Of a stretch of 33,329 bases of DNA, positions 1 through 33,329 are shown piece after piece. Each line of letters opens with the position of its first letter. Positions within the stretch are counted from its first letter, which is position 1. The notes under the pieces are model-generated. The model ran no database searches. It had not been told where the DNA came from and saw only the letters and a program-made list of their open reading frames with translations. The stretch comes from Basidiobolus meristosporus CBS 931.73 (taxonomy: Eukaryota > Fungi > Basidiobolomycota), in NCBI GenBank assembly GCA_002104905.1, contig MCFE01000822.1, forward strand, positions 1 to 33,329, in the 5' to 3' direction. Made by a program: the position numbers and the translations under genes.

Positions 1-1446
1 TACGTACAAATTCTTCTTGGGAGTAAAGTCATTGGCGAAAGTATAACTTTAAAAAATGTTAAACAGTTCCACGGAATTACTCCTCATTGGAATGACAGTA
101 CTGTTGAACAGGCTGTTGGGAGAGTTATTCGCAGTGGTTCTCATGATATGTTGCCTGAAGAAGAACGTTATGTTGACATTTATATTTATGCTGCAGTTAC
201 ACCAGATAATAAAGGTGTCGACAAACTTAAACTTGAAATTTGCGCCCAGAAACAAATGGACATTGTTCATATGAAAAACAAACTTAAAGATGTTGCCGTT
301 GATAGATATATATTTCGCGAAGAACTCACTGAAAAGGATCTTGAGTTAGATATTACGACGTTTGTTTTATATTATGTGGATAAGTATATGAATTTATTCG
401 TCCAGAAGATACAGCTAATATTTAAAGACAAAACCTGGTTGTTTCTGTCTGATGTCTTAAATGCTTCTAATATTAACAAAATTATTTTTATGGAAGCTAT
501 TTACAAACTTATTACATCCAATGATAACAGAATCCATTCCGATAAATTTCTTAGAATCTCTGGTGATATTTTATATCTTACGTCTGATCCGCTTTTACCA
601 TTTGAATATGTTTGCGGAGCATTAACTTGGGAAACTCCTTCTCAACCAAAAGATATTTTTGAGAGAAAGGTTGAATATTTAGGATGGGATGAGTTAAACA
701 AATATAACGGCAAGGATCCTCTTGAAATTATACGGGCCATGCAACATATTAAAGATAAGATTTTATTTTTGGAATCTGCATTAATACATAAACGATATGA
801 TTTAATTTTGCCGTTATGGTTACTTTGGTATAAAGATGATCATAATACGTATTATCATATTATGTGTTATAGAGAAGAAGAAGTTGCGTATCGTGCATCT
901 AAACTTATTCCTAAAAAGCTTAGCGGTAAAACCAGAGTGTTTAGGAATGGTAAGTGGGCGTATTTAGATGGAGAGGACGAGAAACAAATAATGGAGGTTT
1001 TTACTGTTAGGTTTAATAATTTAAAATGTGACATTTCTAAGTATCCATTGTTTGGTTTTATATCTATATTAGATAATTATATGCGCATTAAAGTCGAATA
1101 TATGCGAAGAGGTTCTGATAAAGATAGAAGAATGGATCGGCGTGGAAGAAGTTTAACGTCTTTGAAAAAGATAGATTTGGCTGTTATATTGGCGCTTTTG
1201 CAAACTTTTGTAGAAAAACTTAATAACAGTCCGTCTACACATTTTGAGGTTAAAGAAACGGAAGATTTTATATGGAATAAATTAACACAAACGTATTGTT
1301 CATCTTTAGATCCATATGTTGATATTATTAAAGAACAAAATATATTAGATAGGATTTGGGTTACAATTAATAAATGGAATGCCAAAAAGATCAGAGAGTT
1401 AATAAATCATACACTTATGATATATAATTTATACATTATACTATAA
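1..1446 (+). CDS. D6/D11-like (VETF small subunit / NPH-I family) SF2 helicase, 5'-truncated by the window edge
   Basis: Frame 1 is open from base 1 (the ORF track starts it at 148). It reads LLGSKVIGESITLKNVKQFHGITPHWNDSTVEQAVGRVIRSGSHDMLPEEERYVDIY, which matches SF2 motifs V/VI (QxxGRxxR) in the form typical of NCLDV D6/D11 helicases. Ends TAA at 1446. Confidence 0.85.
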   Translation, partial: YVQILLGSKVIGESITLKNVKQFHGITPHWNDSTVEQAVGRVIRSGSHDMLPEEERYVDIYIYAAVTPDNKGVDKLKLEICAQKQMDIVHMKNKLKDVAVDRYIFREELTEKDLELDITTFVLYYVDKYMNLFVQKIQLIFKDKTWLFLSDVLNASNINKIIFMEAIYKLITSNDNRIHSDKFLRISGDILYLTSDPLLPFEYVCGALTWETPSQPKDIFERKVEYLGWDELNKYNGKDPLEIIRAMQHIKDKILFLESALIHKRYDLILPLWLLWYKDDHNTYYHIMCYREEEVAYRASKLIPKKLSGKTRVFRNGKWAYLDGEDEKQIMEVFTVRFNNLKCDISKYPLFGFISILDNYMRIKVEYMRRGSDKDRRMDRRGRSLTSLKKIDLAVILALLQTFVEKLNNSPSTHFEVKETEDFIWNKLTQTYCSSLDPYVDIIKEQNILDRIWVTINKWNAKKIRELINHTLMIYNLYIIL

Positions 1447-1504
1447 ATTAGGAGAGTTATATTTTTGTATTATATATTTAAATTATTTTTAAAAAGTTTT
1501 AAAT

Positions 1505-1605
1505 CTGATGTTTGATGTTTAAATTTAAATTTGATATTTGATTTTTGATGTTTAAAATTTAAATTTGATATTTGATGTTTGATGTTTGATATTTGATGTT
1601 TGAAT
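1505..1605 (+). repeat. Degenerate 7-bp tandem repeat (TTTGATG/TTTGATA)
   Basis: tttgatatttgatgtttgatgtttgatatttgatgtttga; the same motif occurs at 4645-4720 and, reverse-complemented, at ~13270, 14680-14765, ~17280 and 18525-18650. Confidence 0.85.
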
Positions 1606-1654
1606 TTTTAATTACGAAATTTGTTTTAAACATTGGGTTTGATTTAATGTTAAT

Positions 1655-1755
1655 TAAATATTTTCAAACGTTTGAATTTAATTGCAGTTAACATTAAATA
1701 TTTTCAGACGTTTGAATTTAGTTGCAATTAACAAAAAGTTTCCAAACGTTTAAGT
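1655..1755. repeat. About 2.5 copies of a 40-bp unit containing the palindrome TTCAAACGTTTGAA
   Basis: Perfect 14-bp palindrome at 1663-1676; variants TTCAGACGTTTGAA at 1703-1716 and TCCAAACGTTTAA at 1741-1753. Confidence 0.75.
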
Positions 1756-1893: not shown

Positions 1894-4422
1894 ATGGACT
1901 GCTTTTTATACGATCTGCAATTGGTTTCTAACGCTCCCGTAATTATTCACGGATATGCTAAATATAATAACCAAACTATTTTACTTGTTATTCACGGGTT
2001 TAAACCTTGGTGTTATGTTGATCTTTCTCTTGCTAAAGTTAAAGACATCTGCCAATATCATGACATTCCTTATTTTAACGTCCAAGAAGTTTATATGCCA
2101 ACATCTCTCGCCATTAAAAATAAAAAATCTCTTATTAAAATTACTTTTATAAACTATTTGCACATGAAAGAATTTGTTCAACATGCTACCCCATTTTTAT
2201 GTTATATGTACGAACTTGAATGTATTCCAATTTTTACATCTAAATACGGCCTCGACTTTGTTGGTTGGGTCCAGATTAAAGATGCTTACACCAAACCCGA
2301 CGATTCTATTACCCATCTCCCAACTTATCATGTTTCTCATCCAACAAAAATATCACCCATCGATGGTAACGAGCCCACTTTCCCAACAGTTATGGCATTT
2401 GATATAGAATGTATGGTCTCTGCCAAATCTGGAATGCCCAAAACTTACAAACCTGGTGATAAGCTCGAGATGATTAGTATTGTTATGACCAATTACATGT
2501 CTGGCAAACTTGATAATTATCTCCTCTTTATCGGCGATCAACCTTTTGATGATCCCGCCTATGATAATGTCACCCAACTTTTTTTCTCTACCGAGGTTGA
2601 ACTTCTTCGAAAGTTTTGCTCTCTCATCCAAAGTTTGGATCCTGATATTATTACTGGATACAACATTTATGGCTTTGATTTTAAATATGTCTTTGAACGA
2701 TTAAGCTTTTATTTAGAACCTCTCCAAAATATGTCTCGACTTACTAATGGCTCTACTAACTTAGTTGATGTAGATTGGGAAAGTAGCGCGTATGGTTATA
2801 ACACTTATTGCAAAGTGGAAATGGATGGTCGCCTTATTGTCGATCTTATGCTTTACTTTAAACGTTTTAAACTCGAAAAATACAGTTTAGATTTTGTCTC
2901 TGAAAAATTTTTAGGTGTTGGCAAAGACGACGTCCATTATGAAGAAATATGGGATGCTTTCGAATCCAGGAACCCGTCTCAGATGAGTCTCGTCGGGAAA
3001 TATTGTGTCAAAGATTCTGCTCTTGTTATCCAACTATTTGAAAAGTTTAACTTGTGGACCGATCTTTGCGAAATGTCTAAAGCCATGAGATGCAGAATTG
3101 GTGAGATTTATACCCGTGGTGAACAACTTAAAGTCAAGAATCAAACCATCAAAGAGTGCATTAACCGAAATGTTGTTCTTGCCCAAATTCAGCGTAAAAA
3201 GAATACATGGGACAAATACAGTGGTGCCAATGTTTTGACCCCTGAACGTGGTATGTATAACCAATGTTGCGTTTTAGATTTCCAATCTTTGTATCCATCT
3301 ATCATGGTTGCTCATAATATTTGCCCGTCTGTTTACGTTAAGAATAAATTTACTACCAACAATGTTAACACTATAGATATGGGTACATACGAACACAAAT
3401 TCTTACAGTCACCTATTGGCATTCTTTCTGGTCTTGTTAAAAATTTAATGGATAAACGCAAAGAAGTTAAACTTAAAATTAAAAAACTGGACGAAAAAGA
3501 TATTTATACTAAACTTATTCTTGATCGTAGACAGAACGCACTTAAGATTTGTGCCAACAGTGTTTACGGTATCATGGGCTTTGAAAAGAATAAATATTTT
3601 GGCCATTTGGGTTGCGCCGAATCTATTACCCGTATGGGTAGAAAATATTTAGATCAGATTGTCACTCATATATCTGATAATTATCCAGTCAGAGTTATTT
3701 ATGGCGACACTGATTCCTGCATGGTTATTCCTACTTCTCCTATCCCCGCACCCGATTATATCCAATTGTGCCATGACATTTGCAAAGATGTTACCAGTAT
3801 GCTTCCTCAACCTATGGCACTTAACTTCGAAGAATACTATGACAAAATTATTCTTATGTCTAAAAAGAGATATATTATGTACAAGAATCAAACTCTTAAA
3901 TACAAGGGTGTTATGAATGCCCGACGAGGATATTGCCAATTTGCAAAAAATCTTTATAGCAGTACTATTACCGATATGGTTAACGATGTTCCCAAAGACC
4001 AGATTATTTCTAACGTTAATAAACATATTACAGATCTTCTGAGAAAAAATGTTCCCATTAATCTTTTAAGCATGACTAAATCTGTTAAAAATTTAGATGA
4101 ATACAAAGTCGAACCCCCTCAAGTTATCATGGCTAAACGATTAATAGCTAATGGTATAGAGGTAAATGCTGGCACTAGATTAGAATATGTTTTTACAACT
4201 TTGGGTGATAAACAAGGTGAAAAGATGTATATGCCTGAAGAGTTGGCAAGAATAGAAGGATTAGAAGTCGATCCTTTATATTATATGGAACATCAAATTA
4301 TGTCTCAGATAGATGATTTGTTGGGAATATTGGGTGAAGATAATTATATTAAACAGATGGTTAGATCGATGAAAAAGGCTGAACGATATGCAAAGAAATT
4401 AGAGCAAACGCAAACTGTATAA
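1894..4422 (+). CDS. polB: Family B DNA polymerase (viral), about 842 aa, no intein apparent
   Basis: ExoI AFDIECM, ExoII GYNIYGFDFKY, ExoIII YCVKD, region II DFQSLYPS, region III KICANSVYG, region I YGDTDS. First ATG is at 1894; the track start at 1825 is a TTG. Confidence 0.97.
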   Translation: MDCFLYDLQLVSNAPVIIHGYAKYNNQTILLVIHGFKPWCYVDLSLAKVKDICQYHDIPYFNVQEVYMPTSLAIKNKKSLIKITFINYLHMKEFVQHATPFLCYMYELECIPIFTSKYGLDFVGWVQIKDAYTKPDDSITHLPTYHVSHPTKISPIDGNEPTFPTVMAFDIECMVSAKSGMPKTYKPGDKLEMISIVMTNYMSGKLDNYLLFIGDQPFDDPAYDNVTQLFFSTEVELLRKFCSLIQSLDPDIITGYNIYGFDFKYVFERLSFYLEPLQNMSRLTNGSTNLVDVDWESSAYGYNTYCKVEMDGRLIVDLMLYFKRFKLEKYSLDFVSEKFLGVGKDDVHYEEIWDAFESRNPSQMSLVGKYCVKDSALVIQLFEKFNLWTDLCEMSKAMRCRIGEIYTRGEQLKVKNQTIKECINRNVVLAQIQRKKNTWDKYSGANVLTPERGMYNQCCVLDFQSLYPSIMVAHNICPSVYVKNKFTTNNVNTIDMGTYEHKFLQSPIGILSGLVKNLMDKRKEVKLKIKKLDEKDIYTKLILDRRQNALKICANSVYGIMGFEKNKYFGHLGCAESITRMGRKYLDQIVTHISDNYPVRVIYGDTDSCMVIPTSPIPAPDYIQLCHDICKDVTSMLPQPMALNFEEYYDKIILMSKKRYIMYKNQTLKYKGVMNARRGYCQFAKNLYSSTITDMVNDVPKDQIISNVNKHITDLLRKNVPINLLSMTKSVKNLDEYKVEPPQVIMAKRLIANGIEVNAGTRLEYVFTTLGDKQGEKMYMPEELARIEGLEVDPLYYMEHQIMSQIDDLLGILGEDNYIKQMVRSMKKAERYAKKLEQTQTV

Positions 4423-4644
4423 GTTACAAGATAATTATGTTTGTCATGACACATTAATTATTCCAAACTATTTTTTAATATAAATGTTTTATGTAACAAC
4501 TTTTTTAGATTGTATATTATTTTTAACTCTGAGTAAACTTTTTTTAAAAAGGTTTTTTCTCAGATACTAATATGGTTTAAACTTTTTCCGAACCAAACTT
4601 TAAGTCTTAAATTAAACGTTCATGACTTAAAAAGTTTTTTACGA

Positions 4645-4720
4645 ATTTGATATTTGATATTTGATGTTTGATGTTTAATATTTGAATTTTAAATTCGGAT
4701 TTTAATATTTAATATTTAAA
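4645..4720 (+). repeat. Degenerate 7-bp tandem repeat (TTTGATA/TTTGATG)
   Basis: atttgatatttgatatttgatgtttgatgtttaatatttgaa, downstream of polB. Confidence 0.8.
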
Positions 4721-4807
4721 TATGGTTTTTAAATTTAGTTTGCGAAAAAGTTTTTACAAAATTATTTAAATCAACTCAAACCATTTGGTTTAAACTTTTG
4801 AAACGAC

Positions 4808-7452
4808 TTTTGTACAATGTCAGCGGATTTGTATATTATCATCTCTTTAATATGGTAACTACGACCCAACTTTGTAAATTATTAAAGATACAATAATTTG
4901 CATCCTGTTGTTGAATTTGTATAGCACCACCGTATTTGTATCTATATAAATTCTCTAATCTGGTAACTACGACTTAACTTTGTAAATTTATAAAGATACA
5001 AAAAATCGCTTCTTGTTGCCAAATTTATATAGTGTCATAGCATTTGTATTTTGAGAAATTCCCTAATCCGGTATTTACGACTAGGGTTTGTAAATTATTT
5101 AAGATACAATTATTTACACCTTGTTACCGATTTTGTACAGTGTCACCCCATTTGTATCTTTATAAATTCCCTAATCTGGTAACTACAACCCAACTTTGTA
5201 AATTATTAAAGATACAAAAATTCACACCTTGTTACCGAATTTGTATAGTGTCAGTGTATTTGTATCTTAGGGAATTCTCCAATCCGGTAACTACGACCTA
5301 ACTTTGCAAATTATTAAAAATACAATTATTTGCTCCTTGTTGTTAAGTTTGTATAGTGCTACCGCATTTGTATCTTAAGAAATTCCCTAATACAGTAATT
5401 GCGACCTAACTTTGTAAATTGTTAAAGATACAATTATTTACACCCTGTTACCGATTTTGTATAGTGTTACCGCATTTGTATCTTATGAAATTCCCTAATA
5501 CAGTAACTACGACCCAACTTTGTAAATTATTTAAGATACAATAATTCGCTTCCTGTTACTGAGTTTGTATAGTGTCACCCCATTTGTATCTCAAAAAATT
5601 CCCTAATCTGGTAACTACGACCCAACTTTGTAAATTATTAAAGATACAATAATTTGCATCTTGTTGTTGAATTTGTATAGTGTCACTGCATTTGTATCTT
5701 AAGGAAATTCCCTAATCTGGTAACTACGACTTAACTTTGTAAATTTATAAAGATACAATAATTTGCATCTTGTTACCGATTTTGTATAGTGTCACCCCAT
5801 TTGTATCTTAAGAAAATCCCTAATCTGGTAACTACGACCCAACTTTGTAAATTATTAAAGATACAATAATTTACTCCTTAATACTTATTTTGTACAGTGC
5901 CACCGTATTTGTATCTATATAAATTCCCTAATATGGTATTTACGACCTAACTTTGTAAATTGTTAAAGATACAAAAATTTACACCTTGTTACCGATTTTG
6001 TATAGTGCCACCGTATTTGTATCTTAATAAATTCTCTAATCCAGTAACTACGACCCGAAGTTGTAAATTATTAAAGATACAACATTTTACACCCTGTTAC
6101 CGATTTTGTACAGTACCAGTGTATTTGTATCTTATGAAATTCTCTAATCTGGTAACTACAACCCAACTTTGTAAATTATTAAAGATACAATAATTTACTC
6201 CTTAATACTTATTTTGTACAGTGTCATACTATTTGTATCTTTATAAATTCCCTAATCTGGTATTTACGACCCAACTTTGTAAATTGTTAAAGATACAATA
6301 ATTTACACCTTGTTACCGATTTTGTATAGTGCCACCTCATTTGTATCTTTATAAATTCCCTAATCTGGTATTTACGACCCAACTTTGCGAATTATTAAAG
6401 ATACAAAAATTTACACCCTGTTACCGATTTTGTATAGTGCCAGCGCATTTGTATCTTATGAAATTCTCTAATCCAGTAACTACGACCCGAAGTTGTAAAT
6501 TATTAAAGATACAATTATTTACTCCCTAATACTTATTTTGTACAGTGTCACCCCATTTGTATCTTTATAAATTCCCTAATACAGTAACTATGACCTAACT
6601 TTGTAAATTATTAAAGATACAATTATTTACACCCTGTTGTTGAATTTGTATAGTGTCATCGTCTTTGTATCTTAAGAAATTCCCTAATCTGGCAACTACG
6701 ACCTAACTTTGTAAATTATTAAAGATACAAAATTTTACTTCCTAATACTTATTTTGTATAGTGTCAGTGTATTTGTATCTTATGAAATTCCCTAATCCGG
6801 TAACTGCGACCTAACTTTGTAAATTATTAAAGATACAATTATTTACTCCCTAATACTTATTTTGTATAGTGTCACCTCATTTGTATCTTATGAAATCCCC
6901 TAATCTGGTAACTACGACCCAACTTTGTAAATTTTTAAAGATGCAATTATTTCTTCCTTGTCACCGATTTTGTACGGTGTCATCGTATTTGTATCTTAAG
7001 AATTCTCTAATCCAATAACTACGACCCAACTTTGTAAATATTAAAGATACAATTATTTACACCTTGTTGTTGAATTTGTATAATGTCAGTGCATTTGCAT
7101 ATTATAAATTCTCTAATCCAGTAATTGCGACCTAACTTTGTAAATATTAAAGATGCAAAAATTTACTCCCTGTTACTTATTTTGTATAGTGCCAGCAAAT
7201 TTGCATCTTAAGAAATTCCCTAATACAGTAACTATGACCCAGCCTTGTAAATATTAAAGATGCAATTATTTACACCCTGTTGTTGAATTTATATAATGTC
7301 ACTGCATTTGCATCTTATAAATTCCCTAATCCAATAACTATGACCCAACCCTGTAAATATTAAAGATGCAAAAATTTACATCCTGTTGTTGAATTTGTAC
7401 AGTGTCACCCCATTTGTATTTTTATAAATTCCCCAATCCGGCAACTATGCCA
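4808..7452. repeat. Tandem array of about 24.5 x 108-bp units, each with an internal inverted repeat (TTGTATCTT...AAGATACAA); non-coding
   Basis: The GGTAACTACGACC-like core recurs 25 times at 4854, 4962, 5070, 5178, 5286 ... 6907, 7014, 7120, 7227, 7333, 7440. Spacing is 108 bp (one 109; 106-107 in the last units). Stops occur in the reading frames examined. Confidence 0.97.
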
Positions 7453-7519
7453 AGTTTTGTCTTAAGTTATTTATACCACTTCTTATTTCTAAACCTCCGT
7501 TTCATCTCAACAACAAACT

Positions 7520-7640
7520 TTTTTTTCTCGACCCAAACTTAATCATCCAAAACTTTTCTCGACCCAAACCTTTTCCGACCCCCAAACTCTCTCGACCCAA
7601 ACTTTTTCCGACCCCCAAACTCTCTCGACCCAAACTTTTT
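7520..7640 (+). repeat. C/A-rich module repeat (TTTTCCGACCCCCAAACTCTCTCGACCCAAACT x2 plus partial copies)
   Basis: A 33-bp unit occurs twice at ~7571-7636; the same module recurs at ~14775-14808 and partly at ~12353-12380. Confidence 0.85.
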
Positions 7641-7766
7641 TCCAAATTAGTTTTTTATCTCTCCTACCCCCAAATTATTTTTGTTTTAACCACATTTTCT
7701 CGTTTCATCAACCATCCTTCTTATCTAATACCCTTTTTGACTCATCGTCTTATAAACTTCCATATT

Positions 7767-7777
7767 TATACGAAAAT
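7767..7777 (+). promoter_or_regulatory. Candidate viral promoter element TATACGAAAAT
   Basis: CG lies 19 nt upstream of the ATG at 7790; the same motif occurs at 18-20 nt upstream of four minus-strand genes. Confidence 0.5.
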
Positions 7778-7789
7778 TTCTTTCTTATC

Positions 7790-8458
7790 ATGTCTCCCTA
7801 CATCTGGCTATCCCACCCCAACTCTAAAAATTATTCATATTGCGCCAATCTAACTTTTAATGGATGGCATCCTCTCAAAGATAATATCTCCAATTTAGTT
7901 ATTGGCCTCGTTAACCAATCATGCAGTAAAATCCTTTCACCTGACGATATTAATTCCCTTTACCAAAATCACCTACCTTTCGATCCTACCCACGTTGACG
8001 GCAACATTTACAAGTTTATTATCCAATCTATCGCCAACAATACTAATTACTCTCCTTATGTTAGCCAATGGTTTGACACTTATGATTCATGCTTCACCGC
8101 CATGAACGATTTTGACCCTCACACATCATCCCCCGTCTCCAAATCTATCGTTGATAATTTTAATACACCCTTATTTACTCATCCCCTCCCAGAACCTTTT
8201 ACATTTATGGTTGTCGGTATGAGATATTGCACTAACCATACCTTCTCCGTTGGTGACCTTGTTACATTAAACATAGTAGATAATAATCCCCACGATCCCA
8301 ACGCCGTTCAAGTCTTAGTTGATGACGTACATGTTGCCTACGTTTCTCGCAAAGATGCACCCAAACTTAGATCTATTGGCTTCGACAATAAACTTTGTAC
8401 TTGTTTAGAAGTTTACTACCGTAGTGCCAAATTTATACTTGAAGATATATTCTACTAA
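7790..8458 (+). CDS. Protein with a C-terminal HIRAN domain (222 aa)
   Basis: FMVVGMRY...VGDLVTLNIVDNNPHDPNAVQV...HVAYVSRKDA fits the HIRAN pattern (G..Y; L..E/DxxNxxDxNAIxV; GYV). N-terminal half unrecognised. Confidence 0.8.
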   Translation: MSPYIWLSHPNSKNYSYCANLTFNGWHPLKDNISNLVIGLVNQSCSKILSPDDINSLYQNHLPFDPTHVDGNIYKFIIQSIANNTNYSPYVSQWFDTYDSCFTAMNDFDPHTSSPVSKSIVDNFNTPLFTHPLPEPFTFMVVGMRYCTNHTFSVGDLVTLNIVDNNPHDPNAVQVLVDDVHVAYVSRKDAPKLRSIGFDNKLCTCLEVYYRSAKFILEDIFY

Positions 8459-8630
8459 CAACTTTTATTTCTATCCTCTCTTTACGCCCCATGTATATCT
8501 CTTCTTTGATTGTTGAACCCTCCCCCCCGCCTTTTAAAAAATATCCCACTAAACTATCCATGTCCATCCCATTCTCATCTCCATCCAATTAAATTGGTTA
8601 CACCCTCATCCACCCCTTCATATATTGAAC

Positions 8631-11600
8631 ATGAGTAAAGAATCCGTCGTCAACGAATACTTTAATTTTTTAACTCTCTACCAACACCAATATGGTCAAC
8701 AACTCGTTGTTCTTATGCAAGTCGGTAGCTTCTACGAAATTTACGGTGTTGACAACAATACCGAAAAACTTGGTAACCCAGCCGATATCTCCGAGCTCCT
8801 TAATATCATCCTAACTAAAAAAAATAAAAAACTCTCCTACAACAACCGCTCCAACCCCCTACTCGTCGGCTTCCCCTGTGTCGCACTTAAAAAATACATC
8901 CCTTTATTACTCGAGCATAACTACACCCTTGTTATTATCGACCAAAAAGGTTCCCCTCCCAATATCACCCGCGAAGTTACCAATATTATCAGCCCCTCCA
9001 CCTATGTTGACGTTGATGAACCTCTCGTCTCTCGCAATTATCTTGTTCTCTTATTCTTTGACACCAATAAAAAATTAACTTCTGACACCAATAAAAAATT
9101 AACTTCTGACACCAATAAAAAATTAACTTCTGAATCCGATAAAAAATTAATTTCTGAATCCGATAATATCTCTTTTAACATTGGTATTAGTGCCATCGAT
9201 GTTATTACCGGTAAAAATACCGTTTACGAATCTTACTCTACCCCCGAAGATCATCGTCTCTCTTTCGATCATATCCTCTCCTTCCTCAAACAATACCACC
9301 CTCGTGAAGTCGTCTTCTGCTCTCCCTCCAAATATTTAGACTTTATTAAATCCCTCGACCTTGTATCTTACTTAGAACTCTACTCCGACGATATCCTCTT
9401 CCATTACATAGATGCCACTCCTAAAGCTCTTCAACTCAACTACCAGAACGAACTCTTAGGCAACATCTTCCCCCACAAAACCATGCTCTCCAACATAGAA
9501 TTTTTAGATCTCGAACGCAAACCCCTCGCTCTTATTAGTTACGTCCTTCTTATAGAATTCCTTTACCTCCACAATCCCATGCTCGTCCGCAAACTTTCCC
9601 CTCCTGAAATCTTTTTATCCTCCAACCATCTTCTCCTCGCCACCAATACTATAGACCAACTTGATCTTATCCACTTCTCCAAATCCAAGTCTTCCCACAA
9701 ATCTAATCAAACCCAATGTTTACTTGACATTATCGATCTCTGTTCTACTAAAATGGGTAAACGACTCCTTAAAAAGCGTCTCCTCTCTCCCGTCACCAAT
9801 CCCCACAAATTAGAACATCGTTATCGCCAACTCGACGACTTTAGTTCTCTCTTCGAACCTTCCGTAAAAACTTTCGATCGTCTCTTAACTAATATCGCCG
9901 ACCTTGAACGACTTCATCGCCGACTTTTATTAGAAGTTCTAACTTTACCCGAACTTTCTCGACTCTATACCTCTTACAAAGCTATCCTTGATCTTTGCAA
10001 TCTTCTTATTCCTGCCTTCTCCTCCCCTAATACTACTTCTTCCTCTCATGATCTTCCCAACCTACAAACTCTTTCGCTTGATGAGCCTCCCAATATACGC
10101 TCCTCTTCATCCAATGAGCCTCCCAATATACGCTCCTCTTCGTTTGATGATCCTCCCAATATACGCTCCTCTTCATCCAATGAGCTTCCCAATATACGCT
10201 CCTCTTCATCCAATAAGCCTCCCAATATACGCTCCTCTTCGTTTGATGAGCCTCCCAATAGACGTTCCTTTTCATCCAATGAGCCTCCCAATAGACACTC
10301 CTTTTCATCCGATGAGCCTCCCAATATACACTCCTCTTCATCTGATGATCTTCCTAACCCACAAACTTTACCTCCCAAATCTTCTTTACAACATATCCTC
10401 TTGTCTCAACACAAAATTTCCCTTCTTAATAAATTCGTTAACGACATCTCTCGTATCTTTGTTATCGATAATATCCCCACCACTGGCACCCTTGACCCCT
10501 CCATCTTTCGCAAAGGTATCTTCCCCGATCTCGACTCCCTCTCCAACTCTCGAAACTTCTGAACTTGACAAATTAGAAGATATTGCCTTTGCTCTCTCTT
10601 CTCACGCCCTCTCTTATCTTTCTTCTACCTCACGCAAATATGTCGACAAAAAACTTATCCCCATTAAAGTCGACTATTCTCCCCGCTCTGGATACTATCT
10701 TTCTGTCACCAATTCTTTTGCCACCAAACTTAAATCTTCCTTAACCAAATCTTTCATCTCTAACGATAACATTACCTTTAAATCTGACAAATTAAACACC
10801 AAAATCTCCTCCAACAGCCTAACCCACATTAGCGATCATATTCTCTCCCTAGATGACCAAATTAACAAACAACTTAAATCTCTCTTCCTTAGCAGCCTCA
10901 AACACTTATCTTCTTACAAAAATATCTTTCGTCGCATCGAACTCTTTGTCGCCGAATTTGACGTTATTAAATCTAACTACAAAATTAGTCGCCTCTACAA
11001 CTTCTGCCGCCCTGTCGTCAAACTCTCCAACAAAAGTTATTTTAAAGCCACTGATCTCCGTCACCCCCTCATCGAGCGCCTCCAAACTAATCTAGAATAT
11101 GTCCCTAACGATATCACCATCGGTACCAACAACCATGACGGTATTATCTTATACTCCATGAACTCCTGTGGCAAAACCAGCCTCCTCAAAGCCTGCGGCC
11201 TCTCCATCATCCTCGCCCAAATGGGCTCCTTCGTCCCCGCTTCTTCTTTCGAATTCTCTCCCTACAAATCTCTCATGACTCGCATCCTTAGCGAAGATAA
11301 TATTCTCAAAGGCCAATCATCCTTCGTCGCCGAAATGTCTGACCTTAGAAATATCCTCAAACGTGCCGACCCCTACACTTTAGTTCTTGCCGACGAAATT
11401 ACCCACGGCACAGAACACATCTCTGGATCTGCCATCTTTGCCTCCAGCGTCATGACTCTCGCCGAACAAAATATCAGCTTTATGTTCACCACCCATTTAC
11501 ACAACATTTACAAATTTATCAAAGATATTCCCAACGTTAAAGTTTTTCATCTCTCTGTTAATTTCGAACATATTAATTCTAAAAACGTTATTATCTTCGA

Positions 11601-12048
11601 ACGCAAAATTAAAGAAGGCCCCTGTGACTCCATTTATGGCCTCGAAGTCTGCGAATTCCTTAACATGGACTATAACTTTCTCCAAAAAGCTTTCCAAATC
11701 CGTGCCGACATTTTGTCCCGTGAAGATAAAACTTGTCCCACTATTGCCAATGGTCTTCTAAACCAATACTCCAAATATAGCCGTTACAACAAAGATAAAC
11801 TTGTTTACAAATGTCAAATCTGCAACTACGTCCCTACCCAAACTACCGACCTCCCTATCGATGTCCACCATATCCAACATCAACACACTTCTGACAACAA
11901 TGGTATGATCGACCATCGCCACAAAAATTCTAAATCTAATCTCGTTGCTCTTTGCAAAAACTGTCACGTTAAAACCCACCAAAATAAACTCCAGATTAAC
12001 GGCTATGCTAGCACCACCGAAGGTCTTATCTTAAACTTTGAACAATAA
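8631..12048 (+). CDS. mutS7: MutS7-type MutS-HNH fusion, interrupted by one frameshift at ~10555-10562 (pseudogene or assembly indel)
   Basis: First ORF has the mismatch-recognition motif LMQVGSFYEIYG. Second frame has the ATPase motifs YSMNSCGKTS, SSFVAEM, LADEITHGTE and FTTHLH, then a C-terminal HNH/Zn region CQIC...DVHHI...SNLVALCKNCH. The halves are in different frames and join near ...DSLSNSRNF*/ELDKLEDI. Confidence 0.9.
9057..9167 (+). repeat. In-frame 24-bp tandem repeat inside mutS7 (SDTNKKLT, about 4.5 copies)
   Basis: tctgacaccaataaaaaattaact at 9081 and 9105, with variants at 9057, 9129 and 9153. Confidence 0.95.
10080..10343 (+). repeat. In-frame 33-bp tandem repeat inside mutS7 (DEPPNIRSSSS x8)
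   Basis: Eight units such as gatgagcctcccaatatacgctcctcttcatcc, flanked on both sides by a DLPNxQTL-coding direct repeat. Confidence 0.95.
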
Positions 12049-12189: not shown

Positions 12190-12640
12190 TTTTCAAGATC
12201 CAAACTTTATCATCATGAAAACTTTTTAAAAAACTTTTTTAAACATCAAGATTAAAACTTTGTCATCCTAAAAAACTTTTTCGACCAAACTTTTTTCCAA
12301 ATCTAAACTTTGTCATCCCGCAAAACTTTCTCGACCAAACTTAATCTTTCTACTCCCAAACTCTCTCGACCCAAACCTTTTTCAAGATCTAAACTTTGTC
12401 ATCCCGCAAAACTTTCTCGACCAAACTTTTTTCAAGATTTTAGTTTAGTCTTCCCGCCAAACTTTTTTTTAAGATCTAAACTTTGTCATCACGCAAAACT
12501 CTTTTTAAAAAAATTTGTCATCGCGCAACCTTTTTTCGACTAAACTTTTTCAAGATTTTAGTTTAGTCTTCCCGCCAAACTCTTTTCAAGATCTAAACTT
12601 TGTCATCACGCAAAACTTTTTCGACTAAACTTTGACAAAT
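12190..12640 (+). repeat. Composite intergenic repeat of TCAAGATCTAAACTTTGTCATC(C/A)CGCAAAACT, CTCGACCAAACT and TTTTAGTTTAGTCTTCCCGCCAAACT modules
   Basis: About six copies of the AAGATCTAAACTTTGTCATC module and two of TTTTAGTTTAGTCTTCCCGCC in the convergent intergenic region. Confidence 0.85.
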
Positions 12641-13493: not shown

Positions 13494-14492
13494 TTAATTG
13501 CATCCTATTTTAACTTCATCTAATGTTTCATCATCTAAAAATATATTTTCGAACTCCTTTAGTTCATCGTTAGATAAATGTTTTATATATCTAATCTCAA
13601 AACGCTTGGATTTCTTTTCTAATATTTCTTTTAATCTATCTAATTTGCATCTTAAGTTTCCAAACTGCTGTAAAATTTTTTGTTCAGGTTTTTGTTCCAT
13701 ATTTTTGTTAAAATTCCAGACCAATCCTTTCAACTCTCGTTGTATCCTATCTAATCTTTGCCTTGATCTTCGTTCGTCCATTTTAAGTTTTAATCTGTAT
13801 TTTAAATCTTCTTCATATTTTTGCAACACCCTTTTTGATTCTTGTTTAGCCCGAATTAAATCATACTCCAACGTATCCAATTTCTCTTTTAATTGTTGGT
13901 CGGAATTAATTTTTAAATTTTGTATAAAATTATCGGTGTATTTATTATTTAATTCGTTGATTAATAAAAGAGTTTTTACGTAATCTTTGAGATTTGTTAT
14001 ATTAAATATATTACTGTTGTTATAATAAAATCCATCCCTAAACAATAATTTAATATCCCATTTAATGTTATTTAAAACATATAAATTACACCTTTCTGGT
14101 TTACTAAAATCGAGATCGGTTATAATAGTTAGTAATATCATTGCAAAGTGCAAATAACAAATAATAGTATTGTTTTTCTTTAATTCTGTTCGAAAAAAAC
14201 GCCATATTATTGGTAATAGTAACAAACACACTATTATTGCATATTTTTTATCGCTATCATACCAACTTGGATTCAACCAAACCTGCAAATACTTTCTGCG
14301 TTTAATTTTAAAATTAATAATCCAACATGTTGCATTTATTAAAATCAAAAACGCAATAATTACAAAACATGCAATAAATGTGTGTTTAGCAGATCCGCCT
14401 GGGTGAAATATTTGATTGTATAAAAGTGGTATATACAATATATAAATATATCTTCGACACAATCGTCCAATTTCGTAACTTAATTCTCCCAT
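13494..14492 (-). CDS. 4-TM/coiled-coil multigene family, copy 1 (332 aa)
   Basis: Shared motifs INATCWIINFKIKRRKYLQVWLNPSWYD, LNNIKWDIKL and RYIKHLSNDELKEFENIFLDD. Confidence 0.9.
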   Translation of the reverse strand: MGELSYEIGRLCRRYIYILYIPLLYNQIFHPGGSAKHTFIACFVIIAFLILINATCWIINFKIKRRKYLQVWLNPSWYDSDKKYAIIVCLLLLPIIWRFFRTELKKNNTIICYLHFAMILLTIITDLDFSKPERCNLYVLNNIKWDIKLLFRDGFYYNNSNIFNITNLKDYVKTLLLINELNNKYTDNFIQNLKINSDQQLKEKLDTLEYDLIRAKQESKRVLQKYEEDLKYRLKLKMDERRSRQRLDRIQRELKGLVWNFNKNMEQKPEQKILQQFGNLRCKLDRLKEILEKKSKRFEIRYIKHLSNDELKEFENIFLDDETLDEVKIGCN

Positions 14493-14679
14493 TGAGAAAG
14501 GGTTTTTTCGTATTATTAATATTATAACATAAATGTTGACATCAATAAGTTAATTGTATTTGATTTATTTGCGTAAATGGAATTAATAATTTATTGTTAT
14601 ATTATTTGTACATTTTTTGGCATTAAACCCGAAATAATTTTTTGCATTAAGATTTAAACTTTTTTAAAAAACATTTTTC

Positions 14680-14808
14680 AAATATCAAATTTAAATATCA
14701 AATTTCAAAAACCAAATTTAAAATTTAAAAATCAAAAATCAAATATCAAATATCAAATATCAAAATTAAAACTTTTTCCGACCCCCAAACTCTCTCGACC
14801 CAAACTTT
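14680..14808 (-). repeat. 7-bp (ATATCAA/AAATCAA) repeat followed by the CCGACCCCCAAACTCTCTCGACCC module
   Basis: aaaatcaaaaatcaaatatcaaatatcaaatatcaaaa, the reverse complement of the 1505 and 4645 repeats. Confidence 0.8.
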
Positions 14809-14809
14809 T

Positions 14810-15736
14810 TTAAACATCAAGATCTAAATTTTGACAAAAAACAATAATTTTATCACGTCTATAATATCTAAGATATAATTGCAGAATAAATATATTTTTA
14901 AATTCTTCGAGTTCGTCATCAGATAAATGTTTGATGTATTTAAAATTAAAAAGTTTGGATTCCTGTTCAAGAATTTCTCGTTTGTGTTCCCGTTCTATAG
15001 TTGTTAAATTACGTTCAAACTTTTCGTATTCCTGATTTACATTTTGTAAATTTTGTTCCAATTGTTGCTTTAATACGTAATTTATTTCATGCCCAGCATT
15101 CTGGTTGTATTCTTGATCGAACTTATGTTTTAAATTATTAAACTTTTGTCTAAATTGTTGTTTATATTTGTCTGGATAATCATATTTTCCAGATAAATAA
15201 GCGTCCACATAAAGTCTAAGGCGTTCTATGTTTTTAATATTAGCGCTACCAAATTTGACCTCATCAGAATAAGAGATTTTAATATCCCAGTTAATACTAT
15301 TTAATATAGGCAAATTATACTTATTTAAAGTAATAAATTCGCAAAAAAACATTGCGTATATAGCTACTAAACTACATGCAAAATGCATATAATAAAAAAT
15401 AAACCATATAAAACCCAATTCCTTTTGATAACCACAACAAAGTATATACACCAATAATAACGTAAAAATTAGTCCATATTTGTAACTTCCATCATACCAA
15501 CATGGATTTAACAAAACTTGCAAAGATTTGCGACGTTTAAGTTTATGATTAATTATTCAACAAAATGCGTCTATCAAAATAACAGCCAAATACAGAATTA
15601 ACCAAACGATATTACAATTAATTTCAAACTTATACATGCATAAAAATCCAAAATTAAGTATGAAAACATGGTATCTGGCATCTATAATATTAATATGCTT
15701 TACCAAACTTGTAATTGTATGCGCCGAAAGTATCAT
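14810..15736 (-). pseudogene. 4-TM/coiled-coil family, copy 2, with a premature TGA at the conserved Trp
   Basis: ATG at 15736 is in frame with the 14810-15523 ORF. The sequence reads IDAFC*IINHKLKRRKSLQVLLNP where paralogues have DATCW; the TGA is at 15557-15559. The C-terminus also diverges after KHLSDDELEEFKNIF. Confidence 0.85.
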
Positions 15737-16043
15737 CGAAAAAAAGTATTTTTCGTATTGTTAAAACCATAAACTAGTTGTACATATTAATCTTTTTTAC
15801 ATCAAAAAATTATGCACGCTTATATTAAATTTTATACGCATTAACTTTATATTAATATTTTTGTTTCAAGATTTAAATTTTAACCACTCCCAAAAAACTT
15901 TAACCCCAACAACCAAACTTTTTTAAAAAAACTAATTTTATCCAAAAATAAACAACTTAATCATACAAAAAACATTCTTGATTTAAACATAATAACTCAT
16001 CTTTCTATTTTTTAACGCAACAAATATATCCAATCGTATACTA

Positions 16044-17024
16044 TTATATTTTGCCTGATGCTTCATCATCTAAAAGTATATTTTTAAATTCTTCCAATTC
16101 ATCATTGGATAAATGTTTTATATATCTAACGGTAAATTTTTTAGTTTTTTCTAATATTTCTTTTAACCTATCTAATTTGCATCTTAAATTACCAAACTGT
16201 TGTCTAATTTTTTGGTCAAGTTTTTGTTCTAAATCTCCGTTAAAATTCCACACCAATTCTTTTAGTTCTCGTTGTATATTCTTTAATCTTTGCTCCGATT
16301 TTTGCAGATCTATTTTAGCCTTTATTCTATATTTCAAAACTCCTTCGTATTCTTGCAAAAATATCTTTAATTCTTGTTTAATTCGAATTAAATCTTGTTC
16401 TGAGTTATACGATTTTTCTTTTAATTGTTGATCAGAATTGGTTTCCAAATTTCGTATAAAATCATCCGTATATTTGCCGTTCAACTCTTCTATTAACAAA
16501 AAAATTTCTGCATACCTTTTAAGCTTTATTATGTTCTGAATTGTATTGTCACCCGAAAAGGCTCCGTCTTTAAACAATAAGTTGATATCCCAATTAATGT
16601 TATTTAGAATAAATAAATTATAATTTCCCAGTTTTTTACGTTCCATATACCCTACAATATCTAATAATACCATTAACAAATATAAACAACAAGTACAAAT
16701 TGTATTTGTATGTAATTTTACCCAAAACAGACTCCAGATTACAGGTAATATTAATATAGAATTTAACATTACGTAGTTTTTGTATTCATCATACCAACAT
16801 GGATTTAACAAAACTTGCAAATACTTTCTGCGTTTAATTTTATAATTAATTATCCAACATGTTGCAGATATTAAAATATAAAACGCGATGTGCAAAAACC
16901 GTGCAATAAATGTATAATTATTGAATTTCGTTGAACGAAATACGTCAACGTATAAATCAAGTATATAATATGCAGGAAGATATATTCGACAAAAATGTCC
17001 AAATGCGTAAGTTAATTTTCCCAT
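16044..17024 (-). CDS. 4-TM/coiled-coil multigene family, copy 3 (326 aa)
   Basis: ISATCWIINYKIKRRKYLQVLLNPCWYD ... RYIKHLSNDELEEFKNILLDD. Confidence 0.9.
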   Translation of the reverse strand: MGKLTYAFGHFCRIYLPAYYILDLYVDVFRSTKFNNYTFIARFLHIAFYILISATCWIINYKIKRRKYLQVLLNPCWYDEYKNYVMLNSILILPVIWSLFWVKLHTNTICTCCLYLLMVLLDIVGYMERKKLGNYNLFILNNINWDINLLFKDGAFSGDNTIQNIIKLKRYAEIFLLIEELNGKYTDDFIRNLETNSDQQLKEKSYNSEQDLIRIKQELKIFLQEYEGVLKYRIKAKIDLQKSEQRLKNIQRELKELVWNFNGDLEQKLDQKIRQQFGNLRCKLDRLKEILEKTKKFTVRYIKHLSNDELEEFKNILLDDEASGKI

Positions 17025-17400
17025 TGTAAACGTCTGTTTTTTCGTATAATTTTAGTATTATAAAAAACTGTAAATCTCAATAATTCTATTATAATTATTA
17101 TATTATTCGAACGTCAAACTCGAACCTCAAGATTAAAATTTTTTTTAATAATTTTAAACCAAGTTAGAACCTCAAGATCCAAAGTTTTTGTCGAATAAAA
17201 ATAGTTAAACAATATTTGAACCTCAAGATTAAAACTTTGTCATCCTAAAAAACTTTTTTAAAAAACATTTTCCAAATATCAAATATCAAAAACCAAAGTC
17301 TAAACGATAAACCAAAATTTATATCTTCCTTTCAAGATTTAAACGTGTTCTTAGTCATCCCGATTTTTTTACATCTAAAAATATATCTAATTGTATACTG

Positions 17401-18372
17401 TTATATTTTGTCTGATGCTTCATCATCCAAAAATATGTTGTTGAACTCCTCTAATTCATCATTGGATAAATGTTTTATATATCTAACGGTAAATTTTTTA
17501 GTTTTTTCTAATATTTCTTTTAACCTATCTAATTTGCATGTTAAATTCACAAATTGCCGTTTAATTTTTACATCAAGTTTTTGTTCTAAATTTGTGTTAA
17601 AATTCCAATCTACTTCGACCAGTTCTTGTCGTATATTCTTTAATCTTTGCTCTGATTTTTGTTGGTCTATTTTAACCTCTACTCTACGTTCCAAAATTTT
17701 TTTATATTCTTGCAAGACTCTTTTTAATTCTTGTTTAGCCAAATTCAAATCATACTCTAACGTATTTAATTTGTCTTTTAATTGTTGATCAGAATTGTTT
17801 TCCAAATTTTGTACAAAATTATCGGCATATTTGTTACCCAATTTATTTATTAACAAAACGGTTGTTACGTAATCTTTAAGTTCTATTATCCTATATATTG
17901 TACTGTTACCAATATTCCATCCATCAAAAAGCAATAGTTTAATATCCCAGTTAATGTTATTTAGAATAAATAAATTGTATTTCCCATATTTAATATAATA
18001 GAGATCGGCTGAAATCGATGAAACAATCATCCATAAATATGTATAGCACATAAGGGGTATTTCGGCACGTTTTTTTATTTGATAAAAATACCATATTACA
18101 GGTAGCAATAATATCAAACTTGGTATTGCATTTCTTTTATTCCCATCATACCAACTCGGATTTAACAAGACTTGTAAATGTTTACGGCGTTTAATTTTAT
18201 AATTAATTATCCAACATGTTGCATCTATAAAAACAAAAAGCGCTAAATTTAACAAAATTGCATAAATAGTATAACTACCCAAATTAAATGTATAAATATG
18301 TAACATTGGTATCCCTAATATATAAACATATTTTTTTAAAATTTCCCCAAATGCATATGTTAATTCCCCCAT
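17401..18372 (-). CDS. 4-TM/coiled-coil multigene family, copy 4 (323 aa from the ATG at 18372)
   Basis: MGELTYAFG start matches the paralogues; IDATCWIINYKIKRRKHLQVLLNPSWYD ... RYIKHLSNDELEEFNNIFLDD. Confidence 0.9.
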   Translation of the reverse strand: MGELTYAFGEILKKYVYILGIPMLHIYTFNLGSYTIYAILLNLALFVFIDATCWIINYKIKRRKHLQVLLNPSWYDGNKRNAIPSLILLLPVIWYFYQIKKRAEIPLMCYTYLWMIVSSISADLYYIKYGKYNLFILNNINWDIKLLLFDGWNIGNSTIYRIIELKDYVTTVLLINKLGNKYADNFVQNLENNSDQQLKDKLNTLEYDLNLAKQELKRVLQEYKKILERRVEVKIDQQKSEQRLKNIRQELVEVDWNFNTNLEQKLDVKIKRQFVNLTCKLDRLKEILEKTKKFTVRYIKHLSNDELEEFNNIFLDDEASDKI

Positions 18373-18524
18373 TATAAGTGCTTTTTGTATTATCAAGACT
18401 TTACTATAACTGTAAATATCGATAATTATAACATCAAATTTTCGCACGTTTAAATGTTTAACTCAAATTACCAGTTGTGTTTCAAAATTAATTATTTTGC
18501 AAATCTTTTTTAAAAAACATTTTT

Positions 18525-18650
18525 CAAATATTAAATATCAAAAATCAAATATCAAAAATCAAACATCAAAAATCAAATTTCAAAAATCAAATATCAAATA
18601 TCATATTTAAAATTCGAATTTAAAAACCAAGTTTAAATATCAAAAACCAA
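18525..18650 (-). repeat. 7-bp (ATATCAA/AAATCAA) tandem repeat
   Basis: aaatatcaaaaatcaaatatcaaaaatcaaacatcaaaaatcaaatttcaaaaatcaaatatcaaatatc. Confidence 0.85.
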
Positions 18651-18755
18651 AGTCTAAACGATAAACCAAAATTTATATCTTTCTTTCAAGATTTAAACGT
18701 GTTCTTAGTCATCCCGATTTTTTTTACATCCAAAAATATATCTAATTGTATACTG

Positions 18756-21253: not shown

Positions 21254-21562
21254 AGTTAGTTAACTCGCGAGTTAATCCGATATTTGATTTAAAATCAGGT
21301 GATAATAGAGAATATTTATATAACATAAATGGTACAGGTAATAGGAACTAATACTACAAAATAAATGAAAAAAGTCTGGTTTACTTATTTAGGCAGGCGC
21401 ATCCTTGACCAGTCAATAAAAAAAACTTTTTTAAAAAATTTTTTCGCCAAACATTTTTTTTTGCAAATTTAATTCTGGTGAGTTTAGTTTAGTATATTAT
21501 CCACATTTTTTTAACAACCCGTTTTTAACTTGAAAACTTTTTTCTACACCGTAAATAACCAA

Positions 21563-33264: not shown

Positions 33265-33329
33265 TTCGATACCCTCAAATACTCTTCTCTTTACCATATC
33301 AAAACTGAGCTTCATTATTATTACTATTG

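Follow-up and report, generated by a model that had tools for sequence, protein, structure and literature searches.

Between the family B DNA polymerase gene (polB) and a HIRAN-domain gene of an endogenous giant-virus element lies a tandem array of 108-bp units, which is probably an old, lineage-private, non-coding minisatellite occupying the long polB–HIRAN spacer. Most likely, these repeats serve no specific function. The window analyzed here is the entire contig of a fungal assembly (33,329 nucleotides) and carries a giant-virus-like endogenous element beside host-like DNA. The element is related to pithoviruses, and the fungus is of the Basidiobolus type. A sequence-only reading had described the array, its alleles and its neighbors, and these descriptions were confirmed; its claim of confined variation was not, and its term palindromic proved generous. 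Its interpretation also survived in part. Exchange between units, the setting among replication genes and the Pithovirus lineage were supported, and the proposed structured RNA was not. The coordinates of the features are given in Table 1.

Table 1. Features in and around the 108-bp array (window coordinates)
Feature	Coordinates	Strand	Basis or remark
SNF2/NPH-I-like helicase gene, C-terminal part	148..1446	+	Weak NPHI_C match; contig begins within the gene
Family B DNA polymerase gene (polB), intact open frame	1894..4422	+	Pfam DNA_pol_B 1.8e-78, exonuclease domain 2.3e-31
AT-rich spacer (20% G+C), polB stop to array	4423..4807	+	TRF, heptad pattern, composition
Tandem array, non-coding	4808..7460	+	TRF, unit register, unit alignment, profile matches, six closed frames
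u15, representative well-preserved unit	6321..6428	+	Strongest dyad symmetry of the array
Imperfect palindrome in u15	6340..6407 (arms 6340-6368 and 6379-6407)	.	29-nt arms, 79% complementary
Array–HIRAN spacer	7461..7789	+	TRF, local alignment; C-rich 33-bp repeats at 7557-7640
HIRAN-domain gene, downstream neighbor of the array	7790..8458	+	Pfam HIRAN 3.4e-06
MutS7-like gene, MutS domains I-V and C-terminal HNH	8625..12048	+	Pfam on two pieces searched separately

Tandem Repeats Finder (TRF) reported a single array at 4808-7447 with a period of 108, 24.5 copies, 81% matches and a score of 2888. When the units were placed in register, 24 full units and one partial unit were obtained over about 2.65 kb. 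Unit spacing was exactly 108 bp in 19 of 24 cases and 105–109 bp in the remainder, in agreement with the 25 cores at a near-constant period that had been claimed. A profile of the 24 units recovered precisely these copies plus the partial one (profile positions 1–68, ending at 7460). The core GGTAACTACGACC, with at most two mismatches, matched 20 times in the window, always within the array and always on the + strand, whereas 0.18 matches were expected by chance. Within the array, the arm motif TTGTATCTT had 35 copies, 16 of them on the + strand and 19 on the − strand. A role of this motif as a promoter element, considered for a site that precedes the polB start by 45 nt, was rejected, as its two copies elsewhere in the window were not significant against 0.8 expected. 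A higher-order repeat was rejected as well, because identity rose only faintly at lag 3 (0.83) and lag 6 (0.82) relative to about 0.80–0.81. All six frames were closed, with 38–72 stops per unit-relative frame over the 24 units, and public gene models called no gene over the array.

The units were about 81% identical, corresponding to about 19% substitution divergence. Variation had been described as confined to a few slots, but 68 of the 108 columns varied across units. The description of reusable alleles held: 61 of 89 minor alleles were common to at least two units, and 69–70% of informative site pairs failed the four-gamete test, that is, showed all four combinations. The share of failures climbed with distance: it was 0.47 for sites within 5 nt of each other and 0.8 for those more than 60 nt apart. 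This mosaic arrangement of variants common to several units supported exchange between units by recombination or conversion; recombination had been proposed earlier. Mean identity to the remaining units was 0.76–0.79 for edge units and 0.80–0.83 for central units, indicating that the edges of the array were more diverged.

Substitutions were unevenly distributed. CpG columns made up 11% of columns and 24% of pairwise differences, and the transition/transversion ratio between units was 1.64. Parsimony steps averaged 3.31 in G/C-rich columns versus 1.45 in A/T-rich columns (2.3 times more). When each allele was counted once, 89 events predicted 47 invariant columns; 40 were seen, and they were unclustered. 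A tree-based count gave over-dispersed columns (index of dispersion 2.99) with 40 invariant columns versus 13.8 expected, and this excess persisted inside both the A/T and the G/C classes. The arms (0.55–0.8 steps per column) and the core (1.4) were among the least variable blocks, and the variable slots took 3.5–7 steps. The apparent conservation of columns was largely explained by base composition and recombination.

CpG observed/expected was 0.8–1.5 in the virus-like part and 0.32–0.71 in the host-like flank. Host-driven CpG decay was rejected as the chief source of unit divergence, because the virus-like part was not CpG-depleted and the host-like flank was. This result suggested that much of the divergence between units probably accumulated in a replicating virus that carried the array, which in turn implies that the array was retained for a long time.

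These data fit a minisatellite, and its origin may be pictured as follows. A 108-bp intergenic seed, bearing a short inverted repeat by chance, would have been amplified head to tail, likely via replication slippage or unequal exchange, which is frequent in large DNA viruses that use recombination to replicate. The units would subsequently have diverged to about 81% identity, mostly by G/C-to-A/T changes with CpG sites as hot spots. The variants would have been re-assorted repeatedly, through short-tract conversion as well as unequal exchange, into the mosaic of reusable alleles, and the same processes would leave edge units more decayed than central ones. The array would then have no sequence-specific function beyond perhaps that of a spacer or of recombination-prone DNA.

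Like eukaryotic minisatellites and satellites, the array consists of non-coding, head-to-tail units of constant period with variant mosaics, diverged edges and CpG-biased substitutions, and it is private to its lineage, the spacers of the closest relatives being unassembled. It differs from typical young minisatellites in that its units are more diverged and its period is better kept, and from eukaryotic minisatellites in its location, since the DNA around it derives from a virus and is unlike the host-like flank in composition. Several observations speak against a minisatellite: the period is unusually well kept despite the divergence, columns were over-dispersed in the tree-based count, a double arm change from T-A to C-G was found, long retention in the virus is implied, and the array begins where the cumulative GC skew has its peak.

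The units had been called palindromic, with inverted arms around a core. The arms were found, and both 9-bp arms were perfect in 14 of 24 units. Calling the units palindromic was generous, as the per-unit dyad score was clearly above shuffles in only 3–4 units. In the best units, arms reached 28–29 nt, were 75–79% complementary and lay 10 nt apart; the 10-nt center of the u15 palindrome is part of the core motif. The ungapped dyad score of u15 was 13 versus 5.3 ± 1.3 in shuffles, and 0 of 100 shuffles scored as high. A 68-nt imperfect palindrome surrounds the core, and weaker outer pairs stretched the symmetry over alignment columns 8–104. In a slide control, 85% of candidate pairs were paired in register versus at most 50% with the partners slid. 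In three adjacent units, one arm pair had changed on both sides, from T-A to C-G, and a T/G intermediate was present in a nearby unit. The dyad symmetry is real, yet modest.

The genes around the array were those named before (PolB, HIRAN, and MutS domains I-V with HNH, by Pfam), and together with the SNF2-like helicase they form a replication and repair cluster; a replication gene cluster had been proposed. The virus-like genes there were largely intact. The MutS7-like gene lies in two frames, owing either to one frame change or to an intron; a public gene model of 921 residues that covers the gene has the intron. An SNF2 helicase lies directly upstream of polB in relatives too. Relatives of PolB were 40–55% identical over about 90–96% of its length, and the HIRAN relatives were 67% and 58% identical, one of them named from Basidiobolus ranarum. 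The polymerase clade of Basidiobolus and other fungi was reported to be closest to Pithovirus (PMC7017919), so the earlier comparison with Pithovirus was apt by lineage; the same paper coined the name 'fundsalphavirus', applied here to the element. The polB–array spacer holds a heptad (TTTGATR)n and further short tandem repeats at about 4645-4741, and the same heptad-repeat module precedes both polB and the array. Other spacers of the element were equally AT-rich and also full of tandem repeats, suggesting that the element's DNA tends to form repeats generally. The cumulative GC skew was maximal at about 4800, the left edge of the array, and fell steadily to about 23 kb regardless of gene strand; only 4.8 kb lies left of this turning point, and the skew is noisy there.

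Alternatively, the array could be a cis-acting, protein-binding viral element that acts as a replication origin, as an enhancer, or in partition or tethering. Each unit would present a dyad site and three direct TTTGTA motifs to a putative multimeric DNA-binding protein, and the adjacent AT-rich spacer would be a candidate unwinding region. We regard this role as doubtful. The correct dyad register, the low variability of arms and core, the one pair-preserving double change, the strict period and the probable long retention in the virus are consistent with it, as are the replication/repair genes around the array. The heptad-bearing AT-rich flank and the skew turning point hint at it; the comparative evidence gives it no support. 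Block conservation largely reflects A/T content and recombination, covariation measures were not significant, the skew maximum has its short and noisy left side, and the AT-rich flank is matched by the other spacers. The specific proposal that the array is a replication origin or genome-maintenance (tethering/partition) element of a fungus-associated pithovirus-related giant virus, with an iteron-like dyad field, an AT-rich unwinding region and a sign change in strand composition, and retained by the virus while its units drifted apart to 81% identity, seems rather unlikely.

The distribution of the unit also weighed against a cis-acting role. The unit had been proposed for a search elsewhere, and the profile found no further copy in the 33-kb contig, including 23 kb of virus-like sequence, and no match in 12 related loci totaling 169 kb. 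An exact pattern of the core plus flank matched nothing in viral, metagenome or prokaryote genome collections, the last of which holds bacteria and archaea only, so that a match to a fungus was impossible there. A looser inverted-repeat pattern gave only single chance sites per contig, and the loci it returned (L028 onward) were left aside. The sequence-only reading had looked to a conserved position in relatives. Among the related loci that cover sequence downstream of polB, no comparable array was found beside polB; other genes directly follow polB there, or the spacers have no array. The contigs of the closest relatives, among them those from public read sets with the 55% PolB and 67% HIRAN relatives, break inside the polB–HIRAN spacer. 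With the array absent from the relatives read, a conserved position finds no support in the data at hand. The last ~150 nt before HIRAN are kept in a relative (window 7633-7787 aligns with L005 90-241, score 46). A possible remnant unit upstream of HIRAN in L005 and L006 (a 10-mer of the core, then a 7-mer) was rejected, as 89 of 200 shuffles scored as high, and the conserved HIRAN-proximal block places this site outside the position of the array. A scan of viral contigs with the single PolB sequence found no relatives.

Baculovirus hrs occupy several dispersed loci per genome, where a known transactivator binds, and their activity as origins and enhancers has been demonstrated; ascoviruses and nimaviruses have similar interspersed repeats. 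Like hrs, the array is non-coding, belongs to a large DNA virus and has tandem units, each with an imperfect palindrome at its heart. Unlike hrs, it is a single locus in the 33-kb contig, belongs to an unrelated virus group and is known from sequence alone. Pfam scans of the ORFs in the window found no homologue of a known binding protein. Herpesvirus family-of-repeats elements tether latent episomes and have units of ~30 bp with an identified binding protein, and for coccolithoviruses, AT-rich families of non-coding repeats have been put forward as origins. The array resembles both by analogy only, as a set of dyad-symmetric sites flanked by AT-rich sequence in a large DNA virus; the units of those elements are shorter than its 108-bp unit.

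The pithovirus repeats suggest another possible origin. Their clusters are reportedly also about 2 kb long (Legendre 2014). Pithovirus M1 and M2 have near-perfect terminal inverted repeats of 54 and 47 bp that fold at −79 and −65 kcal/mol (Rigou 2023, PMC10664404). They alternate as (M1-M2)n at many loci, make up 16–18% of the genome and show putative TA duplications (PMC10664404). Like them, the array is a non-coding, kilobase-scale cluster (2.65 kb) of dyad-symmetric units on the 100–150-bp scale (108 bp), and its copies seem to spread and exchange via recombination; the likeness drawn here is one of architecture. The array could accordingly be a decayed tandem descendant of a miniature inverted-repeat transposable element or of an M1/M2-kind palindromic repeat, which we consider improbable. 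The lineage of the polymerase (PMC7017919) is compatible with such a descent, and pithovirus palindromic clusters, with units ~140 nt apart, may also multiply by recombination (PMC10664404). The 68-nt palindrome within each unit, with symmetry reaching over columns 8–104, and two dispersed arrays of a 110–126-bp unit in the relative L009 point the same way. Compared with the long terminal repeats and stable hairpins of M1 and M2, however, the arms here are 9–12 bp where perfect, as in most units, and at most 29 nt where imperfect, the units fold at only −7 to −10 kcal/mol, and the arms are internal to the repeating unit. M1 and M2 form many dispersed clusters, whereas one unit type at one locus was present in the window. 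No target-site duplication was readable, because all units come from one array and offer no independent insertion sites. No transposase was found near the array; the sole integrase-like fragment sits in the host-like flank.

Transcription of the array into a multi-unit structured RNA or many small RNAs is very improbable. The arm path from T-A through T/G to C-G fits pairing on the + strand, and the array, preceded by the same heptad-repeat module as polB, occupies a gene-like slot. However, a tRNA scan of the array and an Rfam search at E-values up to 1 gave no match, so that a tRNA or a described RNA family was rejected. The single-strand folding energies of the units had z-scores of −0.35 to −2.25 against shuffles, no better than the shuffles themselves, and the consensus structure had only 6 pairs (−0.29 kcal/mol). 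Covariation stayed at the level of column shuffles (85.2% versus 84.6% paired; 49 of 500 shuffles as high), and no gene model covers the array. That the array is a remnant of a 36-residue protein-coding repeat (108 = 36 codons) is close to refuted: the period is divisible by three and stops are scarcer than expected in one unit-relative frame (38 versus 59 ± 7), but even this frame has ~1.6 stops per unit whereas the adjoining genes are open, and a search of 1.84 billion representative proteins gave no relative for the longest ORF of the array (85 aa).

Most of what is known about giant-virus-like DNA in fungi concerns its genes, and there are hardly any descriptions of its non-coding architecture. 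The array shows that a fungal pithovirus-related element carries large intergenic repeat arrays, as pithoviruses do. Such an array may explain the polB–HIRAN breaks in the short-read contigs of the closest relatives, though these breaks fall in other short repeats. If it acted in cis in replication or maintenance, it would give a first way into the question of how fungi come to retain such viruses; as repeat DNA without a specific function, it would be of practical use chiefly for tracing the history of the element. A search for other parts of the element through its paralogue family returned the window and a single 1.3-kb contig, and nothing else.

Tandem Repeats Finder detected a single outstanding array in the window, at 4808–7447, with a period of 108, 24.5 copies, 81% matches and a score of 2888. 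In register, it was composed of 24 full units, followed by a 25th in which the repeat decayed after about 68 positions, which confirmed the sequence-only reading of 25 copies at a near-constant period. The spacing was exactly 108 bp in 19 of 24 cases and 105–109 bp in the others, mostly toward the right-hand edge. A profile HMM made from the 24 aligned units recovered exactly the array copies (the last matching profile positions 1–68 and ending at 7460), and a search of the whole window with it found no unit outside the array. The core motif (up to 2 mismatches) occurred 20 times versus 0.18 expected, and every copy was a + strand site within the array. The 9-bp arm motif occurred 35 times in the array (both strands) and 2 times elsewhere in the window, versus 0.8 expected. 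The tandem repeat, profile, core and arm counts indicated that the array is real and far beyond chance.

The window covers contig MCFE01000822.1 (NCBI assembly GCA_002104905.1) from end to end. The proposed position of the array between polB and the HIRAN and mutS7 genes was upheld by Pfam (table). In relatives, too, an SNF2 helicase directly precedes polB. The MutS7-like gene occupies two frames with one frame change, which the public gene model spans with an intron; its two pieces were searched separately against Pfam, and no joined version was used. The gene also contains in-frame coding tandem repeats, a 24-bp unit × 4.1 and a serine/proline-rich 33/99-bp unit × 8.

Features of the contig around the 108-bp array
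Feature	Position	Strand	Remarks
SNF2/NPH-I-like helicase, C-terminal part	contig start		Pfam
Heptad (TTTGATR)n arrays	1504–1604 (+), 4646–4679 (+), 13272 (-), 14677–14764 (-), 17278 (-), 18530–18605 (-)		
40-bp repeat	1653–1751		2.5 copies, palindromic centre; between heptad array and polB start
Family B polymerase gene (polB)	1894–4422		Pfam; reading frame open
108-bp array	4808–7460	+	
C-rich tandem repeats built on CAAACTTT	7500–7640, 12285–12634, 19921–20049, 21527–21929		
HIRAN-domain gene	7790–8458		Pfam; reading frame open
MutS7-like gene	8625–12048		Pfam: MutS domains I–V and HNH domain
Paralogous gene family	13494–22750	-	five or six tandem genes, ~210–350 aa
332-aa ORF	20255–21253	-	
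Host-like flank	22800–33329		G+C 0.36–0.54
Integrase-core fragment (weak)	25735–25986	-	host-like flank
POT/PTR2 transporter ORF	30199–31644	+	host-like flank

The mean identity between units was 81%, and the best pair shared 93%. The central 68 nt of the unit form an imperfect palindrome centred on the core. Over 23 candidate pairs, 85% of cells paired, whereas at most 50% did so when partners were slid by 1–3 columns, indicating that the symmetry register is real. The 9-bp arms were both perfect in 14 of 24 units; the longer arms are imperfect, reaching 28–29 nt in the best units with 75–79% complementarity and 10 nt between them. Weaker outer pairs carry the symmetry across alignment columns 8–104. 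The right arm is contested by a second small hairpin whose centre lies ~27 nt further along. The alignment of the 24 full units also revealed three direct TTTGTA motifs per unit and a fourth on the opposite strand inside the right arm.

Variation had been thought to be limited to a few slots, which was overstated, as 68 of the 108 columns varied in the unit alignment. The discrete, reusable alleles shuffled between units were borne out: 61 of 89 minor alleles were common to several units, and all four combinations were present in 69–70% of informative site pairs, a share that climbed from 0.47 for sites ≤5 nt apart to 0.8 for those more than 60 nt apart, whether CpG columns were included or not. 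On the neighbour-joining tree of the units, the columns looked over-dispersed (222 steps; index of dispersion 2.99), and 40 were invariant versus 13.8 expected. Because alleles were shared and all four combinations were common, many of these steps are old variants relocated by conversion. With each allele counted once (89 events), 47 invariant columns were expected versus the 40 seen, and the invariant columns were unclustered. G/C-rich columns had 3.31 steps each versus 1.45 in A/T-rich columns, 34 invariant columns were pure A/T and 6 pure G/C, and CpG columns made up 11% of columns and 24% of pairwise differences; the A/T-rich blocks are the conserved ones in the unit. Base composition and recombination thus weaken the over-dispersion of columns as evidence of constraint. 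The shuffled alleles are a sign of exchange between units and need not imply selection. The mean identity to the rest was 0.76–0.79 for edge units versus 0.80–0.83 for central units, as is usual in arrays homogenised by unequal exchange.

A search for the unit in 12 related loci (169 kb) found none (best E-value 0.51). The exact pattern was absent from viral, metagenome and prokaryote genome collections, and a looser inverted-repeat pattern gave just single chance sites in viral and metagenome contigs. Four close relatives (L007–L010) came from an alignment-based polymerase scan, from which seventeen distant loci (L011–L027) were left out. No sizeable tandem repeat was detected at polymerase loci L002, L008, L010, L250 and L251. 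The only arrays in L252 had periods of 33–93 bp and no more than 4.4 copies, and L007 had two small arrays (83 bp × 2 and 50 bp × 4) a short way downstream of polB. The sole other long-period arrays in the relatives sampled were two dispersed ones in the metagenomic locus L009 (PolB 41% identical), at 3738–4002 and 18447–19103, with a G+C-richer unit of 110–126 bp in 2.4–4.7 copies. Since related polymerase loci have no comparable array, a 24-copy array beside polB does not appear to be a clade feature, with the closest relatives' contigs all stopping within the polB–HIRAN spacer. The upstream contig ends in L004–L006 carry short C-rich CCAAAC-type repeats and no recognisable unit; a candidate remnant unit in L005/L006 (10-mer and 7-mer likeness) was no better than chance. 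Basidiobolus ranarum, the closest named HIRAN relative, keeps the HIRAN–MutS synteny, and the closer relative has a 162-residue gene of unknown family after HIRAN. In the Mortierella element L250, a HIRAN-domain gene (8493–9080) lies ~1 kb upstream of polB, indicating that the HIRAN–polB linkage recurs in the clade.

The array is best supported as an old minisatellite private to this lineage. A 108-bp seed in intergenic DNA, carrying a short inverted repeat, would have been amplified in tandem, and the units would then have evolved by biased point mutation and exchange between units. The evidence for a cis-acting role was not decisive. Points in its favour are the strict 108-bp period, arms and a core that rank with the least variable blocks, and one arm pair preserved through a double change, but the comparison with relatives gave it no support. 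Also in its favour, the array follows directly on a spacer of 20% G+C with heptad repeats, although the element has other spacers just as AT-rich. The maximum of the cumulative GC skew, at ~4800, coincides with the left edge of the array, with only 4.8 kb of sequence before it. The virus-like genes are also mostly intact, and their region shows no CpG depletion, so the 19% inter-unit divergence probably accumulated in an array borne by a replicating virus.

A multi-unit structured RNA, also proposed from the sequence, was not convincing by folding energy, shuffles or covariation, and nor was a hairpin DNA. The alignment fold retained just 6 pairs (-0.29 kcal/mol), and single units folded at energies between -7 and -10 kcal/mol (z-scores between -0.35 and -2.25). 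Paired cells amounted to 85.2% versus 84.6% after within-column shuffling of the 3' letters (49 of 500 shuffles were as high), and the remaining covariation measures on the units were unremarkable. In three adjacent edge units, one T-A pair had become C-G through changes at both positions, and a nearby unit had T/G there; this double change counts as two mutations within a single sub-lineage and is not significant by itself. Searches of the array found no tRNA, and Rfam gave no match when E-values up to 1 were allowed. A coding repeat was rejected, with all frames closed on both strands (38–72 stops per unit-relative frame over 24 units versus 59 ± 7 shuffled) and no relative of the longest array ORF (85 aa) among 1.84 billion representative proteins.

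Among known systems, the array works most like pithovirus intergenic repeat clusters and ordinary minisatellites. The pithovirus palindromic repeats M1 and M2 are defined by long near-perfect terminal inverted repeats that form very stable hairpins (PMC10664404). The array lacks both, and because such terminal inverted repeats are missing, we would not file it as an M1/M2 family member. Its apparent likeness to baculovirus homologous regions is confined to tandem units with an imperfect palindrome, and the array was seen at one locus in the window.

Relatives of the polymerase were metagenomic and fungal (Mortierella, Linnemannia, Podila, Bifiguratus and chytrids) with 40–55% identity, and the polymerase is a member of the 'fundsalphavirus' clade. 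This clade was placed closest to Pithovirus by its describers, and the fungi listed as carrying endogenous polymerase genes of giant viruses include B. meristosporus (PMC7017919). In its right-hand third, the contig has a higher G+C than in the virus-like part, with a composition boundary near 22.8–23.4 kb. The CpG observed/expected ratio was 0.32–0.71 in the host-like flank versus 0.8–1.5 in the virus-like part, which thus seems to have arrived fairly recently next to host-like DNA. Over 1–23000, cumulative GC skew fell steadily from ~4800 to ~23 kb across + and - strand genes; the asymmetry is independent of transcription direction.

Other spacers of the element hold heptad arrays, C-rich 33–86-bp repeats and a 97-bp repeat (Tandem Repeats Finder), and tandem-repeat formation is a general habit of the element. 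The heptad pattern had 30 matches versus 0.6 expected. Its arrays lie in spacers between same-strand genes, always oriented with the neighbouring gene strand, and may be a regulatory or 3'-end module; the one just upstream of the 108-bp array parallels one upstream of polB. The C-rich motif had 24 matches versus 3.9 expected, 21 of them on the + strand regardless of gene orientation, and its repeats resemble the CCAAAC-type repeats where the L005/L006 contigs break upstream of HIRAN. The 332-aa ORF matched no Pfam family; cysteines and histidines cluster near its N-terminus, and it contains a degenerate internal repeat. No member of the paralogous family matched a Pfam family either. Its proteins have hydrophobic segments at the N-terminus, a charged middle that is probably coiled, and a C-terminal motif in common; apart from those on one 1.3-kb public contig (43% identity), no relatives were found beyond the window.
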